Positions 9,176 through 24,430 of a stretch of 64,000 bases of DNA are shown one piece after another. The notes beneath the pieces were generated by a model. That model searched no databases, was not told where the DNA came from, and worked only from the letters and a program-made list of their open reading frames with translations. The translations under genes were made by a program, and so were the position numbers. The stretch lies in sequence record MK250028.1; one strand, 5' to 3'. How positions within the stretch are numbered: position 1 is the stretch's first letter; every line of letters starts with the position of its first letter.

Positions 9176-9237
9176 CATTTTGTTTTACATATTTAAAGAC
9201 ATTATATATTTATAATATATAATGTCTTTAATTTTTA

Positions 9238-9245
9238 TATAAATA
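9238..9245 (+). promoter_or_regulatory. T4-type late promoter-like TATAAATA
   Basis: Exact match to the T4 late consensus just upstream of a TAG-containing gene; TAAATA recurs before several other TAG genes. Confidence 0.4.
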
Positions 9246-9267
9246 TTGAAATTTATTTTATTCACTT

Positions 9268-10260: not shown

Positions 10261-10291
10261 TTATGGATAGTTTTGATAAAGAAATAAAGAT

Positions 10292-11065
10292 ATGAATATA
10301 ATAGGAAATTATATATATGGTTCAGAAGATTCAACTGATGTAGATATTGCATATATAGTTGATGAATTACCATCATTACAAGAATGTAAAAAGTTTTGTT
10401 CGGCTGATAAGAATGAAAACAGAAACTTAATAACGATAAATAACGGTATTATAACTAATTGTTATAAAGGAACAGTTGATGAATTAAATAATGCGATATT
10501 AGATACATATAAGTTACATGAACAAAATACAGAATTACTTATTAATAGAAAGGTTGGTAGAGATATACCATTGAAACTTATTAGAGCAATACGTGCAATG
10601 TTATCACATCTTTCTAGATCGCAATATAGAAAAGAAATAAAATTAGCATTAAGAAGTAATTGGTATAAGAGGTTAGACGTATTATTAAGTATTAATTTAG
10701 AATATATTGATTTTGATAAATTAAACAATAATATGTCAAGAGAAGATATATTGAAATTATTTGCATTTCAAATAGGTCAATGCATGGGACTTATATATGC
10801 AAGAAAAGAATTATATACAAAAAATGATGTTATTACATGGATAGGCAGTAATCTCGGTTATTGTCTTGATGATTATTTAAAACGAAAATATACAAGTTTA
10901 AATATATTAAATTATTTAAAAGATAAATTAATCTACCAGATTCGTTATAATTTTCCAGCAATAGAGTGTGATAATAATATAGTAAAATTTTTAAAGGACG
11001 GACATAATAAATATTATGATTTAATGCAGGAATGCCAAATAAATATTGAAAATAAAGATATTTAA
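10292..11065 (+). CDS. Pol-beta superfamily nucleotidyltransferase-like protein
   Basis: N-terminal YIYGS..STDVDI (GS..DxD) motif. Confidence 0.6.
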   Translation: MNIIGNYIYGSEDSTDVDIAYIVDELPSLQECKKFCSADKNENRNLITINNGIITNCYKGTVDELNNAILDTYKLHEQNTELLINRKVGRDIPLKLIRAIRAMLSHLSRSQYRKEIKLALRSNWYKRLDVLLSINLEYIDFDKLNNNMSREDILKLFAFQIGQCMGLIYARKELYTKNDVITWIGSNLGYCLDDYLKRKYTSLNILNYLKDKLIYQIRYNFPAIECDNNIVKFLKDGHNKYYDLMQECQINIENKDI

Positions 11066-11068
11066 TAT

Positions 11069-11455
11069 ATGAAGTTGATTTATAACAATATTATTCCTCC
11101 ACATGGATTTATAGCTATTAATATTTTTGGAAATCTTTTTGTAAGGAAAGAATATGAATATAAATTAAAGAATGATAATTATAAGAAAAGAGTATTAAAT
11201 CATGAATCTATCCATACAGAATAGATGAAAGATTTTGCAAGTTTTTTACCAGAATGTGTATAGCAATATATAGGTGGCATAATATTCTATATAATATATT
11301 TCTTTGAATGGTTATGGAGAGTCTTGTTTACAAAACATAGATTTTCACATTAGGCATATAGGAATATAACATTTGAATAGGAAGCCTTTACAAATGAATC
11401 AGATTTAGAATATTTAAGTAAACGAAATCATTTTGATTAGTGGAAAATATATTAA
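11069..11455 (+). CDS. Small HExxH protein (code 15)
   Basis: 128 aa with TAG=Q; LNHESIHTEQ and AYRNITFEQEA. Confidence 0.7.
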
Positions 11456-11460
11456 TATAA

Positions 11461-11497
11461 AAAGGATGTTAATTAAGTTTAACATCCTTTCTTTTTT
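11461..11497 (+). terminator. Intrinsic terminator
   Basis: AAAGGATGTTAA/TTAACATCCTTT stem plus T-tract. Confidence 0.8.
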
Positions 11498-11510
11498 CAT
11501 ATAAACAATG

Positions 11511-11518
11511 TATCTTTG
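11511..11518 (+). promoter_or_regulatory. Bacteroidota primary-sigma -7 element (TAnnTTTG)
   Basis: TATCTTTG upstream of 11564; the same octamer occurs at 23886 and (minus strand) 55016. Confidence 0.6.
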
Positions 11519-11563
11519 TAACTGTATAAATGAAGTAATAATTAATTAAAAATTATAATAATT

Positions 11564-11920
11564 ATGGTAGATCGTTTAAATCAAGAGTTAGAGCTGGATG
11601 ACTTGGTACTTATTGCGCATCCAAAAGTTTCAACATTGCTACGTTGCATTGTTACCAAGATCAATGCAAAGACAGTCACAGTAGCAGCACTCCCAGAGAA
11701 TGACAAAGAGAATGAGGCTGCACAATATTGCCAACATAATATGGCTGCTATAGGCGATCACAAGTTTCATGGAAACTATTTCAGAATAACAAAAGGATTC
11801 AATCGTCGTCCTGAGGAAGTTGTGAAGATTGGTCATTATCAAACAGTGCAAGACAATGGCAAAGATGTTCATTACTCTATTGTTGAAGTTGGTGATGAAG
11901 AACTTTGGCCAACTGATTAA
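11564..11920 (+). CDS. Hypothetical protein
   Basis: 118-aa ORF, TAG-free. Confidence 0.75.
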   Translation: MVDRLNQELELDDLVLIAHPKVSTLLRCIVTKINAKTVTVAALPENDKENEAAQYCQHNMAAIGDHKFHGNYFRITKGFNRRPEEVVKIGHYQTVQDNGKDVHYSIVEVGDEELWPTD

Positions 11921-11936
11921 TAATTAAATATAAATA

Positions 11937-12188
11937 ATGATTATGCAAAATATAGCAAATGAAATAAAAAATAGTAGTATAAAATTTCATAGTAATAAAT
12001 TAAATGGATTAGTAGATATGGTTATGTCTAATGATTCTAGTAATAAAATAGAATTACTACCAATTAATGATAGGGCATTAATTTATACTATGTATTGGTG
12101 TACATCTGAACATAGTAATCTATCAAGATATGAATTTGATAGGCTATTAGAAATGTCAAGGAAATTACGTAACTATTTAAATGAGTAA
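11937..12188 (+). CDS. Hypothetical protein
   Basis: ORF track; overlaps the start of the next gene. Confidence 0.65.
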   Translation: MIMQNIANEIKNSSIKFHSNKLNGLVDMVMSNDSSNKIELLPINDRALIYTMYWCTSEHSNLSRYEFDRLLEMSRKLRNYLNE

Positions 12189-12501
12189 AATAATGGTAAT
12201 AAATAATTCAAATATAAATACTTATATTAAGTTCGCAAGTGAGAAAGTATTGAATTACATTAAAGATTTTAATTCATACTTTGATGCTGATGAAGTATAT
12301 GACATTTTAAAAGAGTTATCTGAATATGATGTGAATATTATGAAATTCAATAAATATATCGGATTTCTTGTATGTCAAGTGTATAAGGATTTTATTAATA
12401 ATGAGATGATTATTGAAAAAAATACAGATTTTCAAAATTTCATTATTCCTATCATTATTAATATAAGTGATAATATTTTAAAAGATAAGATTGAACTATG
12501 A
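12181..12501 (+). CDS. Hypothetical protein
   Basis: ORF track; ATGA coupling to the next gene. Confidence 0.65.
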   Translation: MSKIMVINNSNINTYIKFASEKVLNYIKDFNSYFDADEVYDILKELSEYDVNIMKFNKYIGFLVCQVYKDFINNEMIIEKNTDFQNFIIPIIINISDNILKDKIEL

Positions 12502-12644
12502 CAGACGAACAATTAAAGAAGATATATGATAAGATTAATGAGTTGGTAGACACTGTTAATAAATTAAAAAGTATTATTGCAACTCAAGATAATAAGATAA
12601 GAATATTAGAGATTAAGTTAAATAATGTAGAAAATATATTGTAA
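12498..12644 (+). CDS. Small coiled-coil hypothetical protein (48 aa)
   Basis: Read from sequence; ATGA and TAATG overlaps with neighbours. Confidence 0.6.
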   Translation: MTDEQLKKIYDKINELVDTVNKLKSIIATQDNKIRILEIKLNNVENIL

Positions 12645-13006
12645 TGATAAGTAGTATAATTTTAATGTTATGTTTTTATATGTTTATTATTTCATTAACA
12701 TATCATAGAGATATTCAGGTAATAAACATATTTAATTTTTTTGGACCCATAGAATATACTATAAGATATATTGAAGAATTTGACAATGATTCAAAAATAT
12801 CAAGAAAATACTATAAAATTTATTGGAATTACTTCAGTATTTTGCCATTTTTTCACAATTTTTTGAGTAAAACTGATAATCAGATAGTATATACTGTAAA
12901 TGATGAAACTGAGTTAATTTCCAACTATTTTGTAACATATGAGTCCGCTAGAAATTTCTTATATAAGACAAGAGATTTCACTAAATTTATATTAAATGAA
13001 GAATGA
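12644..13006 (+). CDS. Hypothetical protein with N-terminal TM segment
   Basis: ORF track; hydrophobic N-terminus. Confidence 0.65.
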   Translation: MISSIILMLCFYMFIISLTYHRDIQVINIFNFFGPIEYTIRYIEEFDNDSKISRKYYKIYWNYFSILPFFHNFLSKTDNQIVYTVNDETELISNYFVTYESARNFLYKTRDFTKFILNEE

Positions 13007-13389
13007 AAAATATATTTAAAATAATTAAATTACTTTTCTCTTCAAAATAGTATGTAATATATGCTGTTGATAAAAAGGGAGAACAAGTAAAAGAATAGTC
13101 TAGTAATATTAATGAAACGTTTTGTCACCATATATATGATGATGCAAGATAGACTTTAATTAATACTGTTGGTGAACAAACATATGGTGAAAAATTAGAA
13201 TCATATGAACCAGATTTATTTAACGCATATAAAGAATCAGATTATCAAATAGCAAAATCTGAATATTTGCAAGCAGAATTAGATTACTATAAATTAGTGA
13301 ATAATCCTATGAGTGGAGACGCTAATATCTTATTCACAAGTTATTAGAGATTACAATAGCTAAAGAAACAATATGAAAATTTTTAGTAA
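13003..13389 (+). CDS. Hypothetical protein (code 15, 6 TAG)
   Basis: 128 aa open with TAG=Q; ATGA/TAATG coupling on both sides. Confidence 0.7.
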
Positions 13390-13754
13390 TGATAAAGTTT
13401 AAACATAAAAAGTATAATAAAACTAATTTTGATACTATTAATGTAAAAACAGCTAAAGAAGTTTGTGATATAATAATTAATAAGAAAACACAAGAACTTA
13501 TTAAGAAATGTCCAAGAACATTTAATTATATTAATAATGCAATAAATGAATCTATACGTTTATATTTTACTTCATGTATTATTTACAATAATATATTAGA
13601 TTATAATATAACATTAGATTTAAGCTGTATAAATTTTGATTTTATGAAAAAATCAAGATTTGATGTTATTAGCGATATATTAGAAGTGTATAGAAATAAA
13701 GGATATAAAATAATTCATAATGATAAAGATAAAATAACTATGTATTTTAATTAA
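13389..13754 (+). CDS. Hypothetical protein
   Basis: ORF track. Confidence 0.65.
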   Translation: MIKFKHKKYNKTNFDTINVKTAKEVCDIIINKKTQELIKKCPRTFNYINNAINESIRLYFTSCIIYNNILDYNITLDLSCINFDFMKKSRFDVISDILEVYRNKGYKIIHNDKDKITMYFN

Positions 13755-13803
13755 TATATATATAGACTTTATTAAAATTATATTATATAAATATATAGTT
13801 AAT

Positions 13804-13888
13804 GGAGAGTTAACCTAACGGGGTTAGGGACAATCTGCTAAATTGTTCGTCCATGTATGTGGATGTGGGTCGGGACCACAGCTCTCCG
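13804..13888 (+). tRNA. trnS: tRNA-Ser(GCT)
   Basis: ACAAT-CTGCTAA-ATTGT, long variable arm, G73; T-loop GTCGGGA is atypical. Confidence 0.88.
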
Positions 13889-13920
13889 CAAAAAATCCAC
13901 AACAGATTTAAAGATGTAGT

Positions 13921-14309
13921 GGTCTATAAGTTCGTTCCTTAATGAGAGATTATCACATTATATATGTGCACAAAAGAAATAATGTGATGGACCATAATGA
14001 ATAGATTATCTTAATTTTGGTATCTTCTGCAAGATTCTGATTATTGATAGAAGGTAGTTAAGCTAATTTCATATTCATTTCTATTACAGACGAAGAAAGA
14101 GGAACATTGTTTACAAGTAATAAAGAGTAACCAAATGTTATTGTTATATAGAACTGATATAATAATAGGTGAATGAAACGCTTGGCGCCAATATTAATAA
14201 AAGTGGTTGTTTATGAAAGTAATGTGTTTGATATAAAGATCTGATTAACTCATAAAGTCAAACCGGTATATATTAAATTTTTATATATAAGATAGTAAGC
14301 TTATAGATT
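13921..14309 (+). ncRNA. Candidate large structured ncRNA (about 390 nt) between trnS and trnQ
   Basis: 12-bp closing stem 13921-32/14298-309 and several internal 8-10-bp helices; no long ORF seen. Confidence 0.5.
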
Positions 14310-14313
14310 TTAT

Positions 14314-14384
14314 TGGGATATATTGTAATGGTAGCAACAGGGTTTCTGAGTCCCTTAGTACTGGTTCGAATCCGGTTATCCCAA
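14314..14384 (+). tRNA. trnQ: tRNA-Gln(CTG)
   Basis: TGGGATA/TATCCCA acceptor, AGGGT-TTCTGAG-TCCCT. Confidence 0.88.
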
Positions 14385-14443
14385 CATATTCGTAATTTTT
14401 ATTTTTTATTTTTTTATTTTTAAAGGATTTATACATAAAGAGA

Positions 14444-14477
14444 AAAGGTTAATAAGATTTATTTCTTATTAACCTTT
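14444..14477. terminator. Bidirectional terminator
   Basis: Perfect 14-bp inverted repeat between convergent units. Confidence 0.75.
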
Positions 14478-14502: not shown

Positions 14503-15126
14503 TTAATCTTCATCATCCCAATAATCATAATATTCATTTGGATCATAATTTAATTCTTTATCTTCCTTAAAATTATCAATCACCTTAGAATTTTCAACAA
14601 ATTCTTTTACTTTTTCTATAATATCTGCATCGTTAATCATTATTTCTTGAGTGCCATCTGTTAACATTAAACCATCAATATTTATTTTATCGATTTTACA
14701 TTCAGTTTCATCTGGATCATCAGGTTGATCATAATCATGTGAACGCATACCTGGTGTATAATCAACCCAACAATCAATGTCTGCATTAAATGCTAAACTT
14801 ACGCCATAATCTTCCATTGAACGTGTTAATATTGTTGCTGTTTCATTCTTTGGATCAACATCTGGTATAATATTACACATTAAACAATCGTCATCTTGAT
14901 CATATTGCTCTATATATCCATTATCATTAAGAAGATCCATAATTAATGAATTAATTAATTCTTGTGGCAGTGATTCCATATCAGAAAGATCAATATCTCC
15001 ATTTTCATCATAATACTTTGGATCAATATTAGATGATGTTATTATACCTTCATTAAGTGATTTCTTAAGTGCTGAAGCAATACCATTTACTAATGATTCA
15101 TATAATGCTTTATTTTGTTTCTTCAT
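14503..15126 (-). CDS. Acidic hypothetical protein
   Basis: 207-aa ORF; TAAATA upstream. Confidence 0.75.
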   Translation of the reverse strand: MKKQNKALYESLVNGIASALKKSLNEGIITSSNIDPKYYDENGDIDLSDMESLPQELINSLIMDLLNDNGYIEQYDQDDDCLMCNIIPDVDPKNETATILTRSMEDYGVSLAFNADIDCWVDYTPGMRSHDYDQPDDPDETECKIDKINIDGLMLTDGTQEIMINDADIIEKVKEFVENSKVIDNFKEDKELNYDPNEYYDYWDDED

Positions 15127-15222
15127 AATTTCTATTAAATGCTAAATTATTTTTTATATTTATCATTTTTAAAACTATTTAAAATAATTAATCTATAATA
15201 ATTAAAATAAAAGGTTTGTTTT

Positions 15223-15798
15223 ATGAGTACACGTTGTAATTTACAAATACAAGATAATATAGAAGGAGAACATATATTATATCGACACTGTGATGGTATG
15301 CCAGATTCTGCAGGTAATGAAATAAAGAATTTCCTTAATGACTATGTAAAGAATACTAATACAACATATAATTATGAAGAAATTTCTAAAGGTATTATAG
15401 AACAGTTAGGATTTGAAGACGAAGGTAAAGTAGCAAAAGATATAAACTATTTTTATGAAATTGTTGTGCATCCAAATACAATATTCTATACATGTTGGCA
15501 TGTACCTGTATTTGGCAATTATGATATTGATAGTTTGGAGGATTATCCTGATTGTGAAGAACTAGAATGTGAGGAATTCAATAAGTGTAATATACGAAAA
15601 GAAACTATTAATAAATCAACAGATGATATTGTTGATTCTAAAGAATTATTAAAATATGTAGATAGAAGAAATAAATTTCTTGATGAACTTTTAGATGAAG
15701 TTGAATTAAACGGTGGTATATCAAGAGACAAAATTATGAATATGTTAAAAGTAACATATGATCAGGGGTATAATTATAATAGAGTAGATAATATTTAA
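15223..15798 (+). CDS. Hypothetical phage protein (MSTR..LYRHCDG motif)
   Basis: 191-aa ORF. Confidence 0.75.
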   Translation: MSTRCNLQIQDNIEGEHILYRHCDGMPDSAGNEIKNFLNDYVKNTNTTYNYEEISKGIIEQLGFEDEGKVAKDINYFYEIVVHPNTIFYTCWHVPVFGNYDIDSLEDYPDCEELECEEFNKCNIRKETINKSTDDIVDSKELLKYVDRRNKFLDELLDEVELNGGISRDKIMNMLKVTYDQGYNYNRVDNI

Positions 15799-15810
15799 TT
15801 TATAATTGTT

Positions 15811-15990
15811 ATGAAAAAATATTTAGAGATTCATTTGAAATATGAATTACCAGAAGATTATGATATTGATATTATAAATGATGGTATTGATAATAAAGAA
15901 GCATGGTCTTATATATTAGATTTAATGACAGATAATGAAAATAGAGAAAGTAAGGATACATGTAAATATACAACAGTTAAGATATACTAA
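15811..15990 (+). CDS. Small hypothetical protein (59 aa)
   Basis: Read from sequence; fills the operon gap. Confidence 0.55.
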   Translation: MKKYLEIHLKYELPEDYDIDIINDGIDNKEAWSYILDLMTDNENRESKDTCKYTTVKIY

Positions 15991-15992
15991 AT

Positions 15993-16676
15993 ATGAAACA
16001 TTATGATTCAATAGATAATATAAAATATAATACAGAATTAGTAGGTGAACAGGTATGGGCATTTAATAAATTGGATGGACAAAATTTTTGTGCTAAATAT
16101 TCTGTAAAGAAAAAAGAATTTACAAATTTTGGTTCAAGAAAATGTATGGTAGATGAGACATCAGAACAATTTGGTGATGCTGTACGTTATTTTAAATCAC
16201 ATAATTATTCATCTATATTAAGTAATATAGTTGAAAAACATAGGAGAAAGAAAGATATATTTTATGGCGTTGATGAAATTACGTTTTTCTTCGAATGGTA
16301 TGGTGATCATAGTTTTGCAGGATTTCATTCTGAAGAAGATAAAGATAATATGCATCTTGCATTAATTGATGTGTTCATCAAAAAGAAGGGATATATTGAA
16401 CCAAAGATATATATGGATCTATTTAGAGATTGTGGAATAGAATTGCCGCAATTAGTTTATACGGGACCATTATCAAATGATTTTATTAAAGATATTCAAG
16501 AAAATGACTGGACTGAACCAAATTGTAAATTTCCTTATGTAAAGGAAGGTGTTGTAATAAGGAGATCTACTATTTTAAAAGGACAACGAATGCCTAAAGT
16601 AAAAGTTAAAACAAAATGGTGGTTAACAGAATTGCATAAGAGATATACAGAAGAAGAATGTAAATTATTAGAGTAA
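15993..16676 (+). CDS. ATP-dependent RNA ligase-like nucleotidyltransferase (Rnl2-type core)
   Basis: Motifs KLDGQN (I), FFFEWYG (III), EGVVIR (IV), KVKVK (V). Confidence 0.75.
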   Translation: MKHYDSIDNIKYNTELVGEQVWAFNKLDGQNFCAKYSVKKKEFTNFGSRKCMVDETSEQFGDAVRYFKSHNYSSILSNIVEKHRRKKDIFYGVDEITFFFEWYGDHSFAGFHSEEDKDNMHLALIDVFIKKKGYIEPKIYMDLFRDCGIELPQLVYTGPLSNDFIKDIQENDWTEPNCKFPYVKEGVVIRRSTILKGQRMPKVKVKTKWWLTELHKRYTEEECKLLE

Positions 16677-16678
16677 TT

Positions 16679-17131
16679 ATGACAACAGGTGAATTAGACG
16701 AAATTGTAAAAGATATTATTAATATTTTTGGTAAACATATAAAGCTTGCAAGTTTATCAGGAAAATCATATGCAACAGGACATGAAAATTATTATGATAT
16801 AGTGTTTGAGAATACTACATCATTTACTTCACGAATGTTCGGTTATCAATATAGAAAGTTCCTTAATAATCTTGCAAGTTTAACTAATGGTGAAACAAGA
16901 AAAACAAATTCATATAAAGGATTTGTATATTATTGGTTTCCTGGATTTATTTACAAGAAAAATAATTTAAGAATTGAATTTGGAAGGAAAGGTTGGAATA
17001 GACATAGTGGTGATGATTCAACTACATGTTTTTATATGACGACTAATAACAAATATATTATTGAAGAAATTGTTAATAATATATTAAGAGATAGAGATAT
17101 ACGTATTTTAAAGAAGAATGATTATGAATAA
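16679..17131 (+). CDS. Hypothetical protein
   Basis: ORF track; operonic. Confidence 0.7.
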   Translation: MTTGELDEIVKDIINIFGKHIKLASLSGKSYATGHENYYDIVFENTTSFTSRMFGYQYRKFLNNLASLTNGETRKTNSYKGFVYYWFPGFIYKKNNLRIEFGRKGWNRHSGDDSTTCFYMTTNNKYIIEEIVNNILRDRDIRILKKNDYE

Positions 17132-17771
17132 TAAACCAACATTAGTGATTCCAAAAGGTAGGTTATATACAGGAATTAAACATATGTTTAATGTATGTAA
17201 TATTGATATGCCTGATGAGAATACTAGACAATATTATTTTCCTAATTGGAGTGATGATTGTTCATTATTCATTGCAAAACCTAAAGCAATACCAGAATTA
17301 ATTGCAAGTAAATTCTGTGAATTCGGTATGTGCGGATATGATATTATAAAGAATAGTGAATATGAAAATGATATAGAGCTCATTAAACACATAGGACTAA
17401 ATAGAGTAAAAGTATGTTTAGCTTCACGATATAATATTGATGAATTGTGTCATATGAATAAACCAGTTATTTGTGCCACTGAATTTGATGTGTTAGCAAA
17501 TCATTATTTTACAAAATTAGGAATTCCACATTATATATTAAATACAGCAGGTTCAACAGAAGGATATATTGATATTGGTGCAGATTGTATTATTGATGTT
17601 GTAGAAACAGGGAAAACGCTTAAAGAAAATAATATTAATATATTAGATACACTGATTGATACTGATACATGTATATTTGAACATGCATCATTAATGGATA
17701 CAATGTTACCATCAAATATACAAATAATTTATGATCAATGGATTAATAAGACATGGGAAACGAGAATGTAA
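17118..17771 (+). CDS. hisG: ATP phosphoribosyltransferase, short-form HisG-like
   Basis: IPKGRL, KPKAIP, FGMCGYD, GSTEG..GADCIIDVVETGKTLKEN. Confidence 0.88.
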   Translation: MIMNNKPTLVIPKGRLYTGIKHMFNVCNIDMPDENTRQYYFPNWSDDCSLFIAKPKAIPELIASKFCEFGMCGYDIIKNSEYENDIELIKHIGLNRVKVCLASRYNIDELCHMNKPVICATEFDVLANHYFTKLGIPHYILNTAGSTEGYIDIGADCIIDVVETGKTLKENNINILDTLIDTDTCIFEHASLMDTMLPSNIQIIYDQWINKTWETRM

Positions 17772-18214
17772 AATATATAGTAGAATTTGATGGTAATGAT
17801 GGCACAGGAAAAACTTATACGATAAAAGTATTATCAAAAGTTTTTCCTAACTGCATTTTTATAGATAGAGGATTATTCAGTAAAGCAACATTGCTATCAG
17901 ACGAAAATGATGAAATGTATAAGTATATTGATGATAATATTGATATGAATAGAATTTATATTATATTGGATGATTATCCAGAACATTGTCAAATGCTTAT
18001 AAAAAGAAGAGGAGATTCTATTGAAGAGAAATATCATACAATAGAAGATTTAGAGTATTATCGTAAACAATTTACAAACTTATATGGTTATTGTTGTAAA
18101 AAGAATTATGATAATGTTTATTTAGTTACACGATTATTACCAGATCATGTTCAGGTAATGATTGATATTATTAAGAAATTTACTAATTTTAATAAGGAAA
18201 ATAATAATGAGTAA
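17753..18214 (+). CDS. NMP kinase-like P-loop protein (thymidylate kinase-like)
   Basis: IVEFDGNDGTGKT Walker A, IDRG motif. Confidence 0.7.
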   Translation: MGNENVKYIVEFDGNDGTGKTYTIKVLSKVFPNCIFIDRGLFSKATLLSDENDEMYKYIDDNIDMNRIYIILDDYPEHCQMLIKRRGDSIEEKYHTIEDLEYYRKQFTNLYGYCCKKNYDNVYLVTRLLPDHVQVMIDIIKKFTNFNKENNNE

Positions 18215-18857
18215 AATAATTATTGGTACCAGTAATCCAGGTAAGATTAGAGAAATTGCATCTATTCTTTCACCATTAGGATATGAGATTGAACCGCATG
18301 CATTGGATGTTGATGAAACAGGAAAGACTATTAAAGATAATGCTATTATAAAAGCAAAAGCATATAGTAATGTATTTCCAGATACTTATGTTATTGCAGA
18401 AGATAGTGGATTAGTCGTTCCTAAATTGAATAATCTTCCTGGTCCGTATTCAGCAAGATTTCATGAAATTACAATAGATGATAATTTGAATGTTATAAAT
18501 GTTCCACATGAAGAATTTACTACGGATAAATCTGAACATGATAAACTTAATAATGAGAAGTTGTTGAAGTATATTAAAGATATTCCGTTTGATGAGCGTG
18601 CAGCATATTTTGAAGTATGTTTTGTCATTGCAAAGAATGGAATTATTCAAGAAACATTTAGTGGTTATTCATATGGTTATATAGCAGATGAATTACGTGG
18701 AACAAATGGATTTGGTTATGATCCATTGTTTATTGGTGAGAATACATTTGGTAAGACATATGCAGAACTAGATTCTGCAAGAAAGAATTTAAAGAGTCAC
18801 AGAAAGCAAGCATTGAAACAATTGGGCCTTTGGGTTTCACAGAATATAGAGAATTAA
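18207..18857 (+). CDS. rdgB: Non-canonical purine NTP pyrophosphatase (RdgB/HAM1 family)
   Basis: TSNPGKIRE, EDSGL..PGPYSAR, GFGYDPLF, KNLKSHR; start ATG 18207. Confidence 0.9.
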   Translation: MSKIIIGTSNPGKIREIASILSPLGYEIEPHALDVDETGKTIKDNAIIKAKAYSNVFPDTYVIAEDSGLVVPKLNNLPGPYSARFHEITIDDNLNVINVPHEEFTTDKSEHDKLNNEKLLKYIKDIPFDERAAYFEVCFVIAKNGIIQETFSGYSYGYIADELRGTNGFGYDPLFIGENTFGKTYAELDSARKNLKSHRKQALKQLGLWVSQNIEN

Positions 18858-18863
18858 TAATAT

Positions 18864-19355
18864 ATGAAGAAATTTATTTTTCCAGGTTCATTTGATCCTT
18901 TTACAAATGGGCATAAAGCAATAGTAGATCAGACATATAAATTGTGTGATGAATTTATTATAGCATTAGCGACAAACTTAAAGAAAGGAGAAGGACTTAT
19001 TAAACGTCCTGAGCGTATTAAGTTAATTAAAGAGATTTTTAAAGATTATCCGAATGTAAAGGTAATTGATATGACAGATACCTTGATTTCTGATTATTGT
19101 AAAAAGAATGGAGTTTCTTATATTGTTAGAGGTATCAGAAATTCGGAAGACTTTACATATGAAAAATCATTGGCAGCTACTAACCATTATTTGGCAGGAG
19201 TAGAAACTATGTTGGTAATGGGTTTTTGCGAACCATATAATATTGATATTTCATCTACATTCGTTAGAGAATTGGTACATTATAAATTACCTATTGGTGA
19301 GTTTGTTCCACCAGTTGTTGAACAATATATTAAAGATAATAATTTAACATGGTAA
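18864..19355 (+). CDS. coaD: Phosphopantetheine adenylyltransferase-like (CoaD family)
   Basis: FPGSFDPFTNGH, RGIRNSEDFTYE, ISSTFVRE. Confidence 0.85.
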   Translation: MKKFIFPGSFDPFTNGHKAIVDQTYKLCDEFIIALATNLKKGEGLIKRPERIKLIKEIFKDYPNVKVIDMTDTLISDYCKKNGVSYIVRGIRNSEDFTYEKSLAATNHYLAGVETMLVMGFCEPYNIDISSTFVRELVHYKLPIGEFVPPVVEQYIKDNNLTW

Positions 19356-20218
19356 ATAAGATTCAAGAGGAAGATTTAAAAGCAGTTGAATATTGTAAAA
19401 CTGTATTATATCCTAAATGGAATATCAAAGATTTATATTCTATAGATTTTGATACATTTAGAAAAATGCCATTGGTTGTAGAAGGTGAAAGTAAAGAGAT
19501 ACGTGCATTGGATGATGATTATTGTATCATTTATTTTAAACCTACAATTTATTCATTTACATATAATAGAACTGGTATTGTAGAAGGAAGTAATATTCCA
19601 CGTGTTCATGTAAGTAAAGTATTGTGTGAGTTACTTAAAGAAAATGGTATTAAACATGCATATCTAGATTATGGTGATGAATTTGTATTAGCACGCATAA
19701 TTAAAGATACACCTAATATTGAAGTTGTTGTAAAAGCAAATCATACAGGTACAAGTAAACATAGATATTTTGGTATGGGTAAGTCACATGTAAGAATGTC
19801 ACATCCATATTATTCGGGAATGGAAATTAAAGACATGGAACCATATCCAGCACCTATTGTAAGATTTGATTGGCGAAATCCATTTTGGGAACCAAATACA
19901 CATAAGATGTTAGCTGATGAAGTTATGTGCGATGATCAAGCAGATTATTATATTGATGTTAAGAAAGCAAAGAAAACTGCAGCACTAACATTCAGTGTAT
20001 TAAGTGATTTTCTTGCAAGTAAAGATATTGTTATTTATGATTTGTGTTTGTTTATATCAGAAGATGGTGAAACAGTATATGGAGAAATTTCACCAGATTG
20101 TGGAAGATATAGACATTATGATTTAGGAAGTCTTGATAAGGATGTATGGCGTGCAGGAGGTTCATCAGATCAGGTATTGAAGAAGTGGAATTTACTGTAT
20201 AAAATGATTACACAATAA
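19349..20218 (+). CDS. purC: SAICAR synthetase-like (PurC family)
   Basis: EGESKEI, IEVVVK, GEISPDCGRY, LDKDVWR. Confidence 0.78.
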   Translation: MVNKIQEEDLKAVEYCKTVLYPKWNIKDLYSIDFDTFRKMPLVVEGESKEIRALDDDYCIIYFKPTIYSFTYNRTGIVEGSNIPRVHVSKVLCELLKENGIKHAYLDYGDEFVLARIIKDTPNIEVVVKANHTGTSKHRYFGMGKSHVRMSHPYYSGMEIKDMEPYPAPIVRFDWRNPFWEPNTHKMLADEVMCDDQADYYIDVKKAKKTAALTFSVLSDFLASKDIVIYDLCLFISEDGETVYGEISPDCGRYRHYDLGSLDKDVWRAGGSSDQVLKKWNLLYKMITQ

Positions 20219-20220
20219 TT

Positions 20221-20457
20221 ATGAGAAAATACGAATGTGAGATTGAAGATTATCATGGACATTTCTTTCACCATCGGTTTGAAGCAAACGATGATAATGA
20301 AGCGTTGGATAAAGCAAATGACCATGGTTATAGATATTATGCTAATGATGATACTTTATATTATGTAGAAGGAGATTATGTTGATTATAGTAATATAAGT
20401 ACAGATCATTATAAAGAGAATATAAAGAAGTACCATCAAATATGGACTTCAATTTAA
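20221..20457 (+). CDS. Hypothetical protein
   Basis: ORF track; last gene before the terminator. Confidence 0.6.
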   Translation: MRKYECEIEDYHGHFFHHRFEANDDNEALDKANDHGYRYYANDDTLYYVEGDYVDYSNISTDHYKENIKKYHQIWTSI

Positions 20458-20469
20458 ATAGTATATTTA

Positions 20470-20504
20470 AAAGTCACTAAAATAAAAACTTTAGTGACTT
20501 TTTC
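20470..20504 (+). terminator. Intrinsic terminator
   Basis: AAAGTCACTAAA/TTTAGTGACTTT plus T-tract. Confidence 0.8.
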
Positions 20505-20543
20505 TATTATTATATATGAATTATAATTTAAACTATAAGATAA

Positions 20544-20927
20544 ATGAATTTAATTACAAATATAAAGAAATCATACAAACATATACCATATACATTTAAA
20601 CATTGGAAGATGGTATTGAAATTAGAGAAGAAATATATAGGCTATTATAAATATCCTTTTCATGATTTAGATAAATTGTTCATGTATATATTCTTCCCTT
20701 ATTTAGGAACAAAGATAATTCAGAAAATTCATACAAAGTTTGCTAATCATCATTTACGTAAATATAAGAAACATATGAATTTTGATGAAGCTATTCTTGA
20801 TTGGGAATCTGCAAGGTTTACAAAACCTGATAAACCATTGGATGCGTGGGATACATATCAAAAATATTTTACGGAATTTTCAAATGAGCTTTTACCTATA
20901 TTTGAAAAATTTAACTTGAAACATTAA
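20544..20927 (+). CDS. Hypothetical protein, possible HD-like metal-binding family
   Basis: HDLDK..H..NHH..EAILDW pattern. Confidence 0.6.
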   Translation: MNLITNIKKSYKHIPYTFKHWKMVLKLEKKYIGYYKYPFHDLDKLFMYIFFPYLGTKIIQKIHTKFANHHLRKYKKHMNFDEAILDWESARFTKPDKPLDAWDTYQKYFTEFSNELLPIFEKFNLKH

Positions 20928-20978
20928 AGACTTTATTTATATACGTTTATATAAAATATATAATGATTTTGTTTTAGA

Positions 20979-21350
20979 AGAACATTTATAAAAACTGTTT
21001 TAATAATTAGTGTAAAAGTGAGCACACAGAAAAAGAGAATTATGATAATTTCTGTAGAGCATGGATCAATACCAGCATTATATAATATACAGTTTATAGC
21101 AACGAATGTTCTAAATTTAAATTAACTATATGTCTAACATTCTTAATTTTTATTATTGGTAATAAGTGGCAAAACATGCTAGGAATAGTAAGTTATCGGT
21201 TCGAACCCGATATAATAAAGATAGAAAATGGATGATAGTTAATGATGCTAGATATAACGCTTATTATAGAAGTATTATAGGATTTGATTGAAGTGCGGAT
21301 GTTTATTATACCTGTTCTATTTTTTAATAAAACAAATGTCCCTATAGATT
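20979..21350 (+). ncRNA. Candidate structured ncRNA containing a tRNA-like module (21149-21220)
   Basis: Nested helices 20979-21112; TTTATTAT/ATAATAAA stem with ATCGG-TTCGAAC-CCGAT T-arm; ORF-free gap. Confidence 0.45.
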
Positions 21351-21435
21351 GAAACATGGATTGAGATGAATATAATATGATGTAATTTTAAGTTTGTTAT
21401 ATTTAGCATTAATTTTTTTAATAAGAATTATTAAT

Positions 21436-21879
21436 ATGTATATGTTACGATTACAAGATTTACCAGATGGTGCAATAGTTCAATTATACTATAGGTCTTA
21501 CGAAGAAGGATATGGACGTAGTAAACCAAGGTTTAGAACATATATTATATCATTTAATGATAATACTATAATTTTTTCAAATGTAGAATCTAAATATGAA
21601 GGTAATTTTAGTTTTTATTTAAATCAAACAGCACAATATATACATTTTGATCCAACAGATATAAATAATATTAATAATTTTGGATTTGATAAAAATTATA
21701 TTATTGTATATGGAATTTATACATTTGATGATTCTAATAATAAAGTAAAAATGCCATATTCAATGAACGGCAAGTATAAAATGAACATATACCATACAAA
21801 ATGTATATATCAAGAAGATATATCAAAAATTGCAGAGGATGAAATACAAGCTTACAATAGACGATACAAATATTATTAA
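21436..21879 (+). CDS. Hypothetical protein
   Basis: ORF track, first in-frame ATG used. Confidence 0.65.
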   Translation: MYMLRLQDLPDGAIVQLYYRSYEEGYGRSKPRFRTYIISFNDNTIIFSNVESKYEGNFSFYLNQTAQYIHFDPTDINNINNFGFDKNYIIVYGIYTFDDSNNKVKMPYSMNGKYKMNIYHTKCIYQEDISKIAEDEIQAYNRRYKYY

Positions 21880-22390
21880 TATAAACATATTACCCGGTGC
21901 AAAATTTGAATGTACAATATATAAAGGCAACGGACATTATGAAAGTTCATATGGAACTATTATGAAATGCAATGATAGATTAGTATTAATGTTGTGTGGA
22001 CTTTTGTTTTTTGGATATGACTATCATTCTTGGAATAGTATTCATACTTATAATAAAAAACATTATCTGTATTATAATTATTATAAGAATGATAACGATA
22101 GTATGAAAATAAAAGGTATTGTATGGTATTTAGATTTTGAAAAATATCCAGATAATTTTGGATTGTCTCCAAAATTATTTGTTGTTACTGATATATGGTT
22201 TAATAATATACATATATATAAAAGTAATTATATGTTAAAGAAATACCAACCAAGTTTAAAACCAAATTATATACATGAAGCAAATGAAAATTGTAAATGT
22301 TTTAAATATTGCGGTGGTAGTGTATATTCATCGGAAAAGTTAGAGGAATATGCAGAAGTAATACCTAATAAAAATTATAATTATGAATAA
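21830..22390 (+). CDS. Hypothetical protein
   Basis: ORF track; start uncertain. Confidence 0.6.
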   Translation: MQRMKYKLTIDDTNIININILPGAKFECTIYKGNGHYESSYGTIMKCNDRLVLMLCGLLFFGYDYHSWNSIHTYNKKHYLYYNYYKNDNDSMKIKGIVWYLDFEKYPDNFGLSPKLFVVTDIWFNNIHIYKSNYMLKKYQPSLKPNYIHEANENCKCFKYCGGSVYSSEKLEEYAEVIPNKNYNYE

Positions 22391-23861
22391 TATTAAAGAA
22401 AATAATTTTTTTATTCCTAGAAAAATTGCTGTAGGATTTGTAAAAAGAGCAAATACATATTCAGGAAAGTTATCTTATATTACTTATTATGATAATACTA
22501 ATAAATTACGTAAGGACGTATCTTGGAATGGATGGAGAGATAAAAATATAGAACCTGTATATACGGATAATATTCCAACATCAGGTTTTATTATTAATAA
22601 ACGTGCAGGAGGCGAAAAATGGGGATGGAACCAAAGAGCAACATATGCGCGTATATATGATCCAAGAGGATTTGAATTTGAGATAACTATAGATAATCTT
22701 CTTTGGATTCTTGAATATACTAATTCAGAAAACAAGGAATTAAAAGGACAATTTGTATATAGTTGGTATGGAACTGAACTTGTACTTATGCCTATTGTTT
22801 CATCTGATTATGAAGAATCTAAACGTTTATCTGAACAACAATATAATAAAACATCGTTTAAAGAACGTGATTTAATTCCGGGAACACTTTATAAAATGAA
22901 AGGTAAGGAATTAAATGAATTGGTATATATTGGTAAAGTAAAAGTATCCACAGAATTCAATATGTCTTATGTTAATAAATTAGCATTTGTACCTATACAG
23001 GATTCTTGGAAGTTATATTCACATTATGATAAAAATATCAACAGATCTGATTTCTTTATATTTAAAAGTGTTTCGTCTGTTATAGCAGAAATGCAACAAA
23101 ATTATTTTAGTGAAGATATTGTAAAAGAATATCTACATAGATTTGATATGTGTGCGTATTCATATAATTTCTGGAATAATTTTGGTAATTTCATTGATAA
23201 ATTTGTTTCTGACCATCCATGTATAATGAATGATTATAAAAAACCATATAAGATAGAATATAATAGATATAGCACAGAGAAAAATAATTATAATAATATT
23301 ATTGATAAATTCGAATATAATGGTATAAAGTTAGATTCATTAAGAATTATTCCTGAATGGTTAATTCAAACAGACAGAGAACACATATTTTATGAAAATA
23401 CAAGTGTATTAAAATCTGTTATATCTGATGATGGTAAATCTGTATTGATAAAAGAACAATATCCTACTATAGAAAATATTAATACATTTAATAGGATTGT
23501 ATATAAACGAATGTATGATTTCATGAATATTGATTTAAATACAAATACATTTAATAAAATATGTGATCCTGGATTGTGGGATGAATATAGAGGACATTAT
23601 TCTTTCGAAGTATCAAATATTATATATAAGCATCCATCAGAAACTACAGATGTTCAGAAAGCAAGAGAAATTAATACTCAGGTTTCATTAAATGATAACA
23701 GAACATTCCTATATTATATAACGAAGGATAATTATATATCTATATCATTGCAGGAAATGATACGGAATCATCGATATATGAAATTCGGTTTCTCAAATGG
23801 TATAGAAGAGAATAAATGGATAACATTAGATGCAATATTGTTACCGAAAAAGATTAAGTAA
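22383..23861 (+). CDS. Large hypothetical phage protein
   Basis: 492-aa ORF, TAG-free. Confidence 0.8.
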   Translation: MNNIKENNFFIPRKIAVGFVKRANTYSGKLSYITYYDNTNKLRKDVSWNGWRDKNIEPVYTDNIPTSGFIINKRAGGEKWGWNQRATYARIYDPRGFEFEITIDNLLWILEYTNSENKELKGQFVYSWYGTELVLMPIVSSDYEESKRLSEQQYNKTSFKERDLIPGTLYKMKGKELNELVYIGKVKVSTEFNMSYVNKLAFVPIQDSWKLYSHYDKNINRSDFFIFKSVSSVIAEMQQNYFSEDIVKEYLHRFDMCAYSYNFWNNFGNFIDKFVSDHPCIMNDYKKPYKIEYNRYSTEKNNYNNIIDKFEYNGIKLDSLRIIPEWLIQTDREHIFYENTSVLKSVISDDGKSVLIKEQYPTIENINTFNRIVYKRMYDFMNIDLNTNTFNKICDPGLWDEYRGHYSFEVSNIIYKHPSETTDVQKAREINTQVSLNDNRTFLYYITKDNYISISLQEMIRNHRYMKFGFSNGIEENKWITLDAILLPKKIK

Positions 23862-23885
23862 TTTTTTTATTTCAAAATAATTATG

Positions 23886-23893
23886 TATCTTTG
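23886..23893 (+). promoter_or_regulatory. Bacteroidota -7 element TATCTTTG
   Basis: Upstream of 23939. Confidence 0.55.
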
Positions 23894-23938
23894 TATTGTT
23901 AATAAACAAAAAGTATAAACAATTAAAAATATATAATT

Positions 23939-24430
23939 ATGACAACAAATAAAAAGAATACAGTTAAGAAGTATATACTCTCACAAAATTTACCTTTTGG
24001 TAATTTAAAGTCTGGTATGATTTTTTCTTATGATCCTATTACAAAAACTGCAGTATTTCCAAATGGACAAGAGATTTCACCATTTGATGTAAGTGATAAG
24101 AATTTCGTAAAACCTACGGCAGATGTAAAGTTTAATGTAGGTGATTGTGTCATTTATCATACGCGATTGTATAAGATTACTGATATTAACTATGTAACAG
24201 GTCGTTGTAAGCTTTTAGAGTTTTACGCAAATAAAGAGGTTGATTTTGTAAGTCATTCTGTATTGACAGCAGCACAAGTTTATTGGTTTGTTAATTCGTC
24301 TGGAACTGTTTCATCATCATATATTGGCAAACAACCAGATGCAGACTTATGGAGAGCAAAAACAAAGAACATGTTTAATACCAAGGAGGAGTGTCAGAAG
24401 TATAAGAATATTGTTCTTAAAAGTAAATAA
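23939..24430 (+). CDS. Hypothetical protein
   Basis: 163-aa ORF. Confidence 0.75.
   Translation: MTTNKKNTVKKYILSQNLPFGNLKSGMIFSYDPITKTAVFPNGQEISPFDVSDKNFVKPTADVKFNVGDCVIYHTRLYKITDINYVTGRCKLLEFYANKEVDFVSHSVLTAAQVYWFVNSSGTVSSSYIGKQPDADLWRAKTKNMFNTKEECQKYKNIVLKSK

Follow-up and report, generated by a model that had tools for sequence, protein, structure and literature searches.

A conserved gene set linking HisG to a PurC-like protein in a Prevotella megaphage: a possible branch from histidine biosynthesis to an unusual purine nucleotide

Why would a phage pack enzymes related to histidine synthesis, purine synthesis, nucleotide house-cleaning and CoA synthesis into a single operon? This question was raised by a locus of Prevotella phage Lak-B1/B9, for which we analysed a stretch of 64,000 nucleotides (the window; sequence record MK250028.1). 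The original prediction, made from sequence alone, was that eight abutting or overlapping TAG-free genes ending at one terminator (an RNA ligase, HisG, an NMP kinase, RdgB, and CoaD-like and PurC-like enzymes among them) form a dedicated route to an unusual adenine nucleotide. We assessed this prediction by a combination of profile searches, structure prediction, comparative analysis of gene neighborhoods and literature search.

Gene content of the locus

The observation of an eight-gene, TAG-free operon was confirmed. Eight ORFs are present on the + strand at 15993-20457, with gaps between them of at most 6 nt and overlaps of at most 19 nt, and all eight end in TAA. The domain assignments of the original prediction are also correct. 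The features are as follows.

15223-15990 (+): two abutting upstream ORFs, 15223-15798 (191 aa) and 15811-15990 (59 aa), with no assigned function; the 191-aa ORF had no Pfam or PHROG hit.
15993-16676 (+): g1, ATP-dependent RNA ligase, nucleotidyltransferase domain only (227 aa), with the KxDG motif NKLDG; RNA_ligase PF09414 at 34 bits (cut-off 27), phrog_548 RNA ligase at E 1.9e-12, no PDB sequence match.
16679-17131 (+): g2, 150-aa protein with no Pfam, NCBIfam or PHROG hit and a weak Cas6-like hit (E 1.8e-4, 19.7 bits); its AlphaFold model is poor (pLDDT 59.9) and gave no fold match.
17118-17771 (+): g3, short-form ATP phosphoribosyltransferase (HisG, 217 aa), TIGR00070 at 112.6 bits (cut-off 75.75); only the catalytic domain PF01634 was found, with no C-terminal regulatory domain, and the protein matches HisG structures.
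17753-18214 (+): g4, minimal P-loop kinase (153 aa) related to thymidylate kinase, with motifs DGNDGTGKT, DRG and YHT..DL..YR.
18207-18857 (+): g5, Ham1/RdgB-type non-canonical purine NTP pyrophosphatase (216 aa from the ATG at 18207), TIGR00042 at 157.5 bits (cut-off 145.35); alignment to E. coli RdgB/YggV (1k7k) shows all motifs, including the catalytic Asp (AEDSGL).
18864-19355 (+): g6, CoaD-type nucleotidyltransferase (phosphopantetheine adenylyltransferase-like, 163 aa; motifs TNGH and ISSTFVRE), TIGR01510 at 132.5 bits (cut-off 103.3).
19349-20218 (+): g7, protein of predicted PurC fold (289 aa), here termed PurCl, SAICAR_synt PF01259 at 39.7 bits (cut-off 20).
20221-20457 (+): g8, 78-aa His/Asp/Tyr-rich protein with no hit in any library searched, conserved at 72% in a divergent Lak relative.
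20469-20502 (+): terminator-like hairpin with a 13-bp stem and a T-rich tail, 12 nt after the last stop.

The g4 kinase had no significant Pfam hit on its own, its only hit being an enoyl-reductase domain below cut-off (E 0.0085), but a profile built from its family alignment matched thymidylate kinase structures in the PDB (2pbr, E 2e-9). The terminator scan found 6 sites in 8.5 kb, against 1.2 expected. The absence of TAG is meaningful in this genome. When only TAA and TGA were counted as stops, other ORFs in the window carried up to 19 in-frame TAGs (30619-33714), whereas every ORF from 15211 to 24430 above the size limit of the scan (which excluded the 59-aa ORF) had none. Lak phages are reported to read TAG as Gln and to have TAG-free regions longer than 5 kb (PMC6784885). 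One correction to the original prediction is that the two upstream ORFs may be the first genes of the same unit, so that transcription may start near 15.2 kb, after a hairpin at 14444-14477. The whole block is conserved in all 15 GenBank Lak genomes, at 100% to 82.7% nucleotide identity.

A four-gene module shared across distant lineages

To test whether the cluster is conserved outside Lak phages, a condition on which the original prediction had been made to depend, we surveyed the neighborhoods of PurCl homologs. Only g3, g4, g5 and g7 form a conserved unit. PurCl homologs at 46-76% identity sit next to HisG, Ham1 and the small kinase, with or without a HisA-HisI-HisE fusion, in Myxococcota, Bdellovibrionota, Planctomycetia, Acidobacteriota, many CPR phyla, a Woesearchaeote, other huge phages and giant-virus-like contigs. 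Of 58 non-redundant PurCl loci, 44 have one or more partners within 6 kb (kinase 40, HisG 30, Ham1 27, HisA-HisI-HisE 15); these loci come from phages, giant-virus-like contigs, CPR bacteria, a DPANN archaeon, Myxococcota and Bdellovibrionota. Gene fusions occur in every pairing. The kinase is fused to PurCl (locus L013 of the survey), to Ham1 (L066), to HisG (L011), or to all of them (L076), PurCl-Ham1 (proteins P0125, P0127 and P0130) and PurCl-Ham1-HisG fusions are found, and a single 1228-aa protein has the order kinase-PurCl-HisA-HisI-HisE-HisG. A 1264-aa fusion lies on a 1.39-Mb viral record. We found no published description of this module.

In contrast, the RNA ligase, g2, the CoaD-like gene and g8 were found next to the module only in Lak phages. 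The nearest non-Lak relatives of g6 are ordinary Bacteroidales CoaD at 42-46% identity, and in a 229-kb phage its slot, between a kinase::Ham1 fusion and PurCl, is held by an endonuclease V. The possibility that all of these are unrelated auxiliary metabolic genes, each keeping its textbook job (more histidine, house-cleaning of ITP, CoA synthesis, de novo purine synthesis), has some support, since HisG, Ham1 and CoaD score above curated equivalog cut-offs, tight packing is normal in phages, and CoaD looks like a plain host-lineage capture. However, synteny of HisG, kinase, Ham1 and PurCl across phyla and domains, and their repeated fusion, cannot be explained by packing. In addition, PurCl fails the PurC cut-off and lacks its catalytic residues (see below), and no other his, pur or coa genes were seen among the immediate neighbors of the cluster. 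We consider this explanation very unlikely.

The histidine-pathway part of the module appears to stop at PRFAR. The TIM-barrel domain of the fusion scores as HisA (153 bits) rather than HisF (44 bits), no HisH/F, B, C or D was found in the module, and no HisZ was seen in the Lak cluster. No Lak record matched HisA/I/E, leaving HisG as the only phage-encoded step in Lak. The statement in the original prediction that the usual partners are absent is true only for Lak; in bacteria and giant-virus-like contigs HisA, HisI and HisE are part of the module.

PurCl as a divergent relative of SAICAR synthetase

The premise that the PurC-like enzyme forms an ATP-dependent amide with Asp was not supported. 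PurCl scores only 26 bits against purC (TIGR00081), for which the cut-off is 189.9 bits, and only 370 of 1.84 billion representative proteins match the family profile. The AlphaFold model (pLDDT 86.9) nevertheless has PurC as its only significant PDB fold matches (TM-score 0.6-0.78). The family motifs are VEGESK, FKPTIYSFT.NR, HTGTSKHRY, VRFDWRNP, DLCLF, GEIS.DCGR.RH and GSLDKDVWRAGGSS, among which HTGTSKHRY and DCGR.RH contribute extra conserved His/Lys/Arg residues. In five PurC structures, D-F-K-[LI]-E aligns with the invariant D-L-C-L-F of the family, (A)DEISPD aligns with (x)GEIS.D, and K-N-D aligns with R-N-P. The corresponding residues of human PAICS (D133, D137, K191, E193 and D207), which are listed in the ATP/Mg/Asp site (PMC9376930), are replaced in PurCl by P, H/E, C, F and G, whereas equivalents of PAICS E97, K228 and R232 and the GEISPD / LDKD..R framework are kept. 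PurCl is the signature of the module and its most conserved gene, with 92.7% amino-acid identity between Lak-A/C and Lak-B. It was never found next to pur genes other than PurA.

The closest known system is the biosynthesis of pentostatin and coformycin in actinomycetes (PenA-PenC-PenB; CofB-CofA), which was not among the options of the original prediction. Pentostatin biosynthesis uses a HisG homolog (PenA), the housekeeping HisI/E/A, a SAICAR-synthase homolog (PenC) and a reductase (PMC11611020; PMC12648386; PMC13055916). CofB reportedly converts the HisA product to 8-ketocoformycin-5'-phosphate without consuming ATP (Ren et al., 2020), which fits the loss of the Mg-ATP residues in PurCl. 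The similarity is one of pathway composition, and several components differ. No SDR reductase (PenB/CofA), the defining last enzyme of these pathways, is conserved in or near the module by unbiased clustering of neighbors, and the Lak-type clade has no phosphatase either. A thymidylate-kinase-like kinase and a Ham1 pyrophosphatase are added as partners, suggesting that the product probably stays a nucleotide rather than becoming a secreted nucleoside. HisA/I/E are often encoded within the module, and its carriers are viruses, CPR/DPANN organisms and predators, not actinomycetes. A more distant PurCl branch in Bradyrhizobium and Nostocales, followed by a HAD phosphatase, may be closer to the antibiotic type.

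Proposed pathway and its possible roles

The interpretation of the original prediction was partly supported: several of these enzymes appear to belong to one dedicated route starting from ATP and PRPP rather than to their textbook pathways, but four of the eight genes are Lak-only passengers, and none of the three suggested products (a modified base precursor, a ZMP-type alarmone or an ADP-ribose-like decoy) was shown. What the sequences themselves establish is the gene content, the conserved linkage and fusion of the four genes, and the divergence of PurCl from PurC; the activity of g3 is inferred from family membership, and the reactions, substrates, product, time of expression and biological role given below are proposals.

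We propose, with no more than moderate confidence, that g3, g4, g5 and g7 are the Lak copy of a previously undescribed nucleotide pathway branching from histidine biosynthesis, with the RNA ligase, g2, CoaD and g8 as co-transcribed passengers. Short-form HisG would condense ATP (or dATP) with PRPP and, lacking a regulatory domain, should escape histidine feedback. HisE, HisI and HisA, which in Lak would have to be supplied by the Prevotella host, would convert the product to PRFAR. PurCl, with the ribotide-binding framework but without the Mg-ATP machinery, would transform the AICAR-like part of PRFAR without consuming ATP, and by analogy with CofB/PenC the product would be a non-canonical, probably ring-expanded (1,3-diazepine, 8-keto-coformycin-type) nucleoside 5'-monophosphate. 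The g4 kinase would raise this NMP to the diphosphate, from which cellular NDP kinase would make the triphosphate. Ham1 would either hydrolyse the triphosphate back to the monophosphate, setting its phosphorylation state, or clear ITP/dITP. Several points weigh against this scheme. As noted above, no reductase is conserved in or near the module, the 8-keto compound is a far weaker adenosine deaminase inhibitor than coformycin, and a kinase and an NTP pyrophosphatase acting on the same nucleotide would form a futile cycle.

The variable neighbors of the module share an inosine and adenine theme. In addition to the endonuclease V described above, a GMP-reductase-like gene lies upstream in L013, and a bona fide PurA, scoring above the PurA cut-off, lies beside the module in 6 loci (5 CPR and one labelled uncultured Planctomycetia). 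The PurA and GMP-reductase neighbors fit equally well with an alternative role in deaminase-independent purine interconversion or salvage. In this view, PurCl would close or cleave PRFAR to give IMP (the carboxamide N attacking the formimino carbon and expelling the aminoketose phosphate) or AICAR, moving abundant adenine nucleotides into the IMP pool, while Ham1 would return ITP to IMP and PurA or GMP reductase would balance A and G nucleotides. This would suit organisms that scavenge nucleotides from hosts or prey, and the module is enriched in CPR bacteria, a DPANN archaeon, predators and viruses. No reductase would be needed, the loss of the ATP/Mg residues is compatible with a ring closure or lyase reaction, and Ham1 and endonuclease V are inosine-specific families. 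However, this alternative gives no role to a dedicated NMP kinase, the partner most often linked or fused to PurCl, a phage with about 26% G+C has little need to drain adenine nucleotides, and no such reaction is known for any PurC homolog, whereas the CofB/PenC precedent exists. We regard it as unlikely, though possible.

A further possibility, which includes options raised by the original prediction, is that the product triphosphate is the end point, serving as a building block for a modified base in phage DNA/RNA or as a signalling nucleotide. A dedicated NMP kinase is what a non-canonical NMP needs to reach the NTP level, and kinase::Ham1 fusions look like a make-and-break pair, comparable to alarmone synthetase-hydrolase pairs; alternatively, Ham1 would remove a competing NTP, as pyrophosphatases do in other phage base-modification pathways. 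In the phage 2-aminoadenine (Z-base) pathway PurZ/MazZ/DatZ, a virus likewise co-opts a paralog of a de novo purine enzyme and teams it with nucleotide pyrophosphatases to make a non-canonical purine nucleotide, although there the paralog is of PurA rather than PurC and the product is known. In the present case there is no evidence of incorporation into DNA, and nothing indicates whether the product is in the ribo or the deoxy series. No linked polymerase, transferase, receptor or effector is conserved with the module, and its presence in CPR bacteria, Myxococcota and giant-virus-like contigs argues against a phage-DNA-specific modification. This possibility remains doubtful.

A role of the module against ATP/dAMP-deaminase defences is plausible but unproven. 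ATP-to-ITP deaminase immunity exists in Bacteroidales (Cad1, PMC11645235). The g5 protein would, like the Kongming sensor KomB, be a HAM1 protein placed in a virus-host conflict that involves inosine nucleotides, but it keeps the catalytic Asp, unlike KomB, and has no SIR2 partner; unlike housekeeping RdgB, it is locked in synteny or fused with PurCl. The module is also common in free-living or episymbiotic cells, where anti-defence cannot be its role. For Lak, the location of the genes in a TAG-free block is taken to suggest early expression, an inference resting only on the absence of TAG codons. In this proposal, the product would inhibit adenine-nucleotide deaminases and Ham1 would remove their (d)ITP product, and together they would blunt deaminase-based immunity of the Cad1, RADAR or Kongming type in Bacteroidales hosts.

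Gene block and its surroundings in the window

To validate the predicted operon, we first examined the conservation, reading frames and termination of the 4.5-kb region. The region is 100% identical to Prevotella phage Lak-B1 and Lak-B9 and is present in all 15 GenBank Lak genomes, with 82.7% nucleotide identity in Lak-A and Lak-C. The window has about 26% G+C. The eight plus-strand ORFs abut or overlap, with gaps of at most 6 nt and overlaps of at most 19 nt, and all end in TAA. The terminator scan detected 6 hairpin sites in 8.5 kb, against 1.2 expected. These results confirm the observation made in the original prediction, whose assignment of domains from the raw sequence was also accurate (see below), although the two additional abutting ORFs that precede the eight genes suggest that the transcription unit may be slightly longer than was first thought. 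The features of the region and of its surroundings in the window are as follows.

340-14385 (+): an array of 17 tRNA genes, ending with tRNA-Gln(CTG) at 14314-14385, about 1.6 kb upstream of the cluster; no CTA (TAG-suppressor) anticodon is among them in this window
1757-2296: an ORF with an HNH endonuclease domain (E 9e-9) inside the tRNA array; its 5' part overlaps tRNA-Tyr (1792-1875), so the real start is probably further downstream
14444-14477: a perfect 14-bp hairpin scored as a terminator on both strands, between the tRNA-Gln gene and the minus-strand ORF 14503-15126
15223-15990 (+): two abutting ORFs preceding the eight genes
15993-20457 (+): the eight genes, g1 to g8
20469-20502: a 13-bp hairpin with a T-rich tail, following the eight genes
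33757-34734 (-): an ORF with a weak DHHA1-domain hit (E 1.6e-4, below cut-off), which may be a DHH-family phosphoesterase
About 34000: a change in the sign of GC skew (about +0.2 before, about -0.25 after), at the same point where ORF orientation switches from mostly plus to mostly minus; this could be a strand-switch or replication-related boundary

When only TAA and TGA were treated as stops, many ORFs elsewhere in the window were found to carry in-frame TAGs, up to 19 of them, whereas every ORF between 15211 and 24430 has none. Long reading frames continue through 8, 8 and 19 in-frame TAGs in three consecutive genes at 28676-33714 (19 of them in 30619-33714), with further examples at 6996-8030, 9250-10260 and 55094-56257, which is direct evidence of TAG recoding. 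This is in agreement with the published finding that Lak phages read TAG as glutamine and contain TAG-free regions (PMC6784885).

Assignment of the eight proteins by comparison with curated domain and equivalog profiles, structures and predicted models.
g1: RNA ligase domain with the KxDG adenylylation motif ('NKLDG'), subfamily unresolved; PF09414, 34 bits against a cut-off of 27
g2: no credible match; poor single-sequence AlphaFold model with meaningless Foldseek hits, and a weak Cas6-like hit (E 1.8e-4)
g3: short-form HisG, 217 aa; TIGR00070, 112.6 bits against 75.75; catalytic domain PF01634 only, without the C-terminal regulatory domain; residues 7-191 align with short- and long-form HisG structures
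g4: small P-loop kinase-like protein; P-loop and DR(Y/F/G) motifs present, and the family profile matches thymidylate kinase 2pbr at E 2e-9, with Pfam scores below cut-off and about 50 residues of the NMP-binding region missing
g5: Ham1/RdgB; TIGR00042, 157.5 bits against 145.35; all RdgB motifs including the catalytic Asp
g6: CoaD; TIGR01510, 132.5 bits against 103.3; T/HxGH and ISST motifs visible as 'TNGH' and 'ISSTFVRE'
g7: SAICAR_synt domain, but not a PurC; PF01259, 39.7 bits against 20; purC equivalog TIGR00081, 26.1 bits against 189.9
g8: no hit in any library searched

In g5 the sequence 'IAEDSGL' aligns with RdgB 'IADDSGL', whose second Asp is the one changed to Ala in PDB 2pyu. We considered the alternative that g5 is a sensor resembling the HAM1 protein KomB of the Kongming system, in which the catalytic Asp is replaced by His and a SIR2 partner is present (bioRxiv 10.1101/2024.12.20.629578). 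This reading was rejected, since the Asp is retained and no SIR2 domain is in the cluster. A counter-defence of the NAD-reconstitution type was likewise not supported, as no NAMPT, PRPP-synthetase-like or Nudix domain was found in the cluster. A search against a defence-system library gave nothing significant for the module proteins.

A conserved gene module around a PurC-like family

To assess whether the eight genes are functionally coupled, we searched for homologs of g7 and analyzed their genomic context. The protein search revealed a tightly conserved family at 55-76% identity in bacteria and other huge phages, which we termed PurCl. Its near-invariant motifs include VEGESK, FKPTIYSFT.NR, HTGTSKHRY, VRFDWRNP, DLCLF, GEIS.DCGR.RH and GSLDKDVWRAGGSS. 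The family profile finds only 370 proteins among 1.84 billion representatives, and PurCl is therefore a small, sharply separated family and not ordinary PurC. In a Myxococcales chromosome and another bacterial genome, PurCl lies in a block with a HisA-HisI-HisE fusion, Ham1 and HisG. We then scanned one genome per species (45 loci) and IMG/VR (17 loci), and examined the flanks with tblastn and with HMMs built from the neighbors. Over 58 non-redundant loci, a small kinase was present within 6 kb of PurCl in 40, HisG in 30, Ham1 in 27 and HisA-HisI-HisE in 15, and any of these partners or PurA was present in 44. The carriers are Myxococcota, Bdellovibrionota/Oligoflexia, Planctomycetia, Acidobacteriota, many CPR lineages (Saccharibacteria, Falkow-, Uhr-, Parcu- and Vogelbacteria), a Woesearchaeote, other huge phages and giant-virus-type MAGs.

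The loci with no partner are truncated contigs, a few other distant or short homologs, and a distant branch (37-38% identity) in Bradyrhizobium and Nostocales that lacks the HisG, kinase and Ham1 neighbors. In the two loci of this branch that we examined (L047 and L051, 8.9-10.6 kb), PurCl is followed by a HAD phosphatase instead, and in Nostocales also by a glutamine amidotransferase, and this may be a version that makes a nucleoside rather than a nucleotide. A rough tree (FastTree, midpoint-rooted, with no support values examined) places the phage sequences, namely Lak, L013 (from another phage-like contig), L015 and L066 (from a 229-kb IMG/VR phage contig), as one clade nested among the bacterial module-type sequences.

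The four proteins were found to be fused in every pairing. The kinase is fused to PurCl in L013 (403 aa), to Ham1 in the 229-kb phage L066 (363 aa) and to HisG in bacteria (328 aa). The proteins P0125, P0127 and P0130 represent PurCl-Ham1, PurCl-Ham1-HisG and HisG-...-PurCl-Ham1 fusions, P0161 is a HisA-HisI-HisE-HisG-PurCl fusion, and single proteins of about 1230-1260 aa carry kinase-PurCl-HisA-HisI-HisE-HisG (locus L076 and protein P0253). A 1264-aa giant-virus protein of this kind (P0236; ATZ80961.1 / YP_010778737.1), deposited from a 1,385,869-bp record and named only for its HisIE part, contains PurCl, HisA, HisI and HisE, with an N-terminal region assigned as HisG or kinase and a C-terminal region of about 214 aa without assignment. 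The proposed pathway is therefore probably also carried by viruses of eukaryotes. The synteny and the fusions, together with the residue losses in PurCl described below, contradict the alternative that these are unrelated auxiliary genes.

In contrast to these four genes, the RNA ligase g1, g2, the CoaD gene g6 and g8 accompany the module only in Lak and its close relatives. The original proposal that the operon as a whole forms a dedicated route to an unusual adenine nucleotide was thus supported only in part. The nearest non-Lak relatives of g6 are ordinary Bacteroidales CoaD at 42-46% identity, which suggests capture from the host lineage, and in L066 the position of g6, between the kinase::Ham1 fusion and PurCl, is taken by an endonuclease V homolog (L066 8444-8944; PF04493, E 1e-11). 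We initially considered that the CoaD-like enzyme adenylylates or cyclizes phosphoribosyl-AMP to give a cyclic-ADPR-like or NAD-like product, but this was rejected because CoaD is absent from every non-Lak module and looks like an ordinary Bacteroidales CoaD. The genes g1 and g2 (15993-17131) abut each other just downstream of the tRNA array. Considering the weak Cas6-like hit of g2 and the published intron-containing Lak tRNAs, they could form an RNA cut-and-join pair, separate from the nucleotide module.

Predicted properties of PurCl and comparison with pentostatin and coformycin biosynthesis

The AlphaFold model of PurCl is confident (pLDDT 86.9), and its only significant structural neighbors are PurC and PAICS, which account for all of the top 38 Foldseek hits. 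The predicted fold is thus that of PurC. However, alignments to five PurC structures show consistent replacements: PurC D-F-K-[LI]-E aligns with invariant D-L-C-L-F, PurC (A)DEISPD aligns with (x)GEIS.D, and PurC K-N-D...D-P aligns with R-N-P...(H/E)-P. The corresponding residues of human PAICS, D133, D137, K191, E193 and D207, are listed in the ATP/Mg/SAICAR site, with K191 also contacting the Asp substrate (PMC9376930), although the correspondence between these numbers and the motifs is our own reading of the alignments. In PurCl they are replaced by P178, E/H, C233, F235 and G245, which are invariant or nearly so across 19 family members. PurCl keeps equivalents of E97, K228 and R232 and adds several conserved His, Lys, Arg and Cys residues. 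We infer a non-ligase reaction on a larger, doubly phosphorylated AICAR-type substrate. The TIM-barrel domain of the feeder fusion scores as HisA (153 bits) rather than HisF (44 bits), and the last feeder product should therefore be PRFAR.

The closest known chemistry is that of pentostatin biosynthesis, which uses PenA (a HisG homolog), the housekeeping HisI, HisE and HisA, PenC (a SAICAR-synthase homolog) and the reductase PenB, and the coformycin, adechlorin and related clusters are built on the same core (PMC11611020; PMC12648386; PMC13055916). CofB is reported to convert the HisA product to 8-ketocoformycin-5'-phosphate, ammonia and erythronate-4-phosphate without consuming ATP, after which CofA reduces the product (Ren et al., PNAS 2020). 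The Lak module shares the coupling of HisG to a PurC homolog and the dependence on HisE, HisI and HisA. No Lak record matched these three enzymes at E 1e-3, and the records labeled as phage that did match look like host his operons, so Lak must use those of the host. The module differs in two ways: no reductase is conserved, and a dedicated, putatively NMP-type kinase and a Ham1 pyrophosphatase are integral parts. Among neighbors within about 6 kb in 35 loci, no short-chain dehydrogenase of the PenB/CofA type or other reductase recurs, and beyond the module genes only PurA and a second kinase family recur. The module is therefore not a coformycin pathway as defined, and at most it is a variant that retains a nucleotide-level product. 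The comparison rests on pathway logic: PDB searches by sequence and by fold, a search of a plasmid collection, and protein searches with g7 and with the distant Nostocales homolog returned no CofB, PenC or other actinomycete sequence.

Proposed pathway and possible roles

In the best-supported chain, ATP (or dATP) and PRPP would be condensed by g3 to phosphoribosyl-ATP, which host HisE, HisI and HisA would convert to PRFAR. The g7 protein would convert PRFAR to a non-canonical, probably ring-expanded, NMP, which g4 would raise to the NDP, with NDP kinase then making the NTP. Finally, g5 would either return the product NTP to the NMP or remove ITP and dITP. Our analysis establishes the family memberships, with that of g4 less firm, the genetic coupling, the loss of PurC's catalytic residues and the absence of a reductase, whereas every substrate and every product in this chain, as well as the activity of g3 and its preference for ATP or dATP, is inferred. 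An alternative is that the triphosphate itself is the end product and serves as a modified base or as a signal. This would fit the kinase and Ham1 pair, but no user protein is linked to the module.

The variable neighbors of the module share an inosine/adenine theme. They include the endonuclease V homolog in L066, a genuine PurA in 6 loci, 5 of them CPR, and a GMP-reductase-like gene in L013 (4893-5918), two genes upstream of its HisG-Ham1-kinase::PurCl block, where a tRNA 2'-phosphotransferase (PTS_2-RNA) gene is also found downstream (11291-11809). The PurA and GMP-reductase context and the scavenging lifestyles of the carriers would also fit a deaminase-independent conversion of adenine nucleotides to IMP or AICAR, although this leaves the kinase unexplained.

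Deaminase-based immunity that converts adenine nucleotides to ITP or dITP is documented for Cad1 from a Bacteroidales type III CRISPR locus (PMC11645235), for RADAR (PMC9994260) and for Kongming, where dITP is the alarm signal (bioRxiv 10.1101/2024.12.20.629578). A deaminase inhibitor together with an ITP/dITP pyrophosphatase, expressed from a TAG-free and presumably early block of an AT-rich phage, would be a coherent counter-measure. This remains a hypothesis, and the abundance of the module in cellular organisms shows that its primary function must be more general. A more far-reaching possibility, which we regard as doubtful on present evidence, is that a widespread, unrecognized branch of nucleotide metabolism leaves the histidine pathway at PRFAR and makes a coformycin-like, ring-expanded purine nucleotide that is kept inside the cell as a nucleotide. 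In this view, megaphages, giant viruses, CPR/DPANN symbionts and predatory bacteria would use it to inhibit adenine-nucleotide deaminases of their hosts or prey, and in phages it would be a small-molecule counter-defense against ATP/dATP/dAMP-deaminase immunity (Cad1, RADAR, Kongming), working together with a co-evolving ITP/dITP pyrophosphatase.

No description of this module was found in the Lak papers or in literature searches on HisG, coformycin or pentostatin, and deaminases in connection with phages and anti-phage activity. Where database entries for family members carry a name at all, it is 'hypothetical' or 'SAICAR synthase'. Histidine-branch pathways to purine analogs are already known, whereas the enzyme set, the distribution and probably the product form described here are new. 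If the model is right, viruses and other cell-dependent microbes synthesize their own transition-state-type enzyme inhibitor, or some other non-canonical purine nucleotide, from ATP and PRPP. It would be a viral counter-defense based on a biosynthesized inhibitor of an immune enzyme, of which we know no example, the known strategies using sponges or nucleases, and it would link antibiotic chemistry previously seen only in actinomycetes and fungi to virus-host conflict. If instead the product is IMP or AICAR, the module would be a new deaminase-independent route from adenine nucleotides to the IMP pool in organisms that lack de novo purine synthesis. The model would also give a function to a family now annotated only as 'SAICAR synthase' or 'hypothetical' in phages, in a 1.39-Mb giant-virus record and in many CPR genomes.
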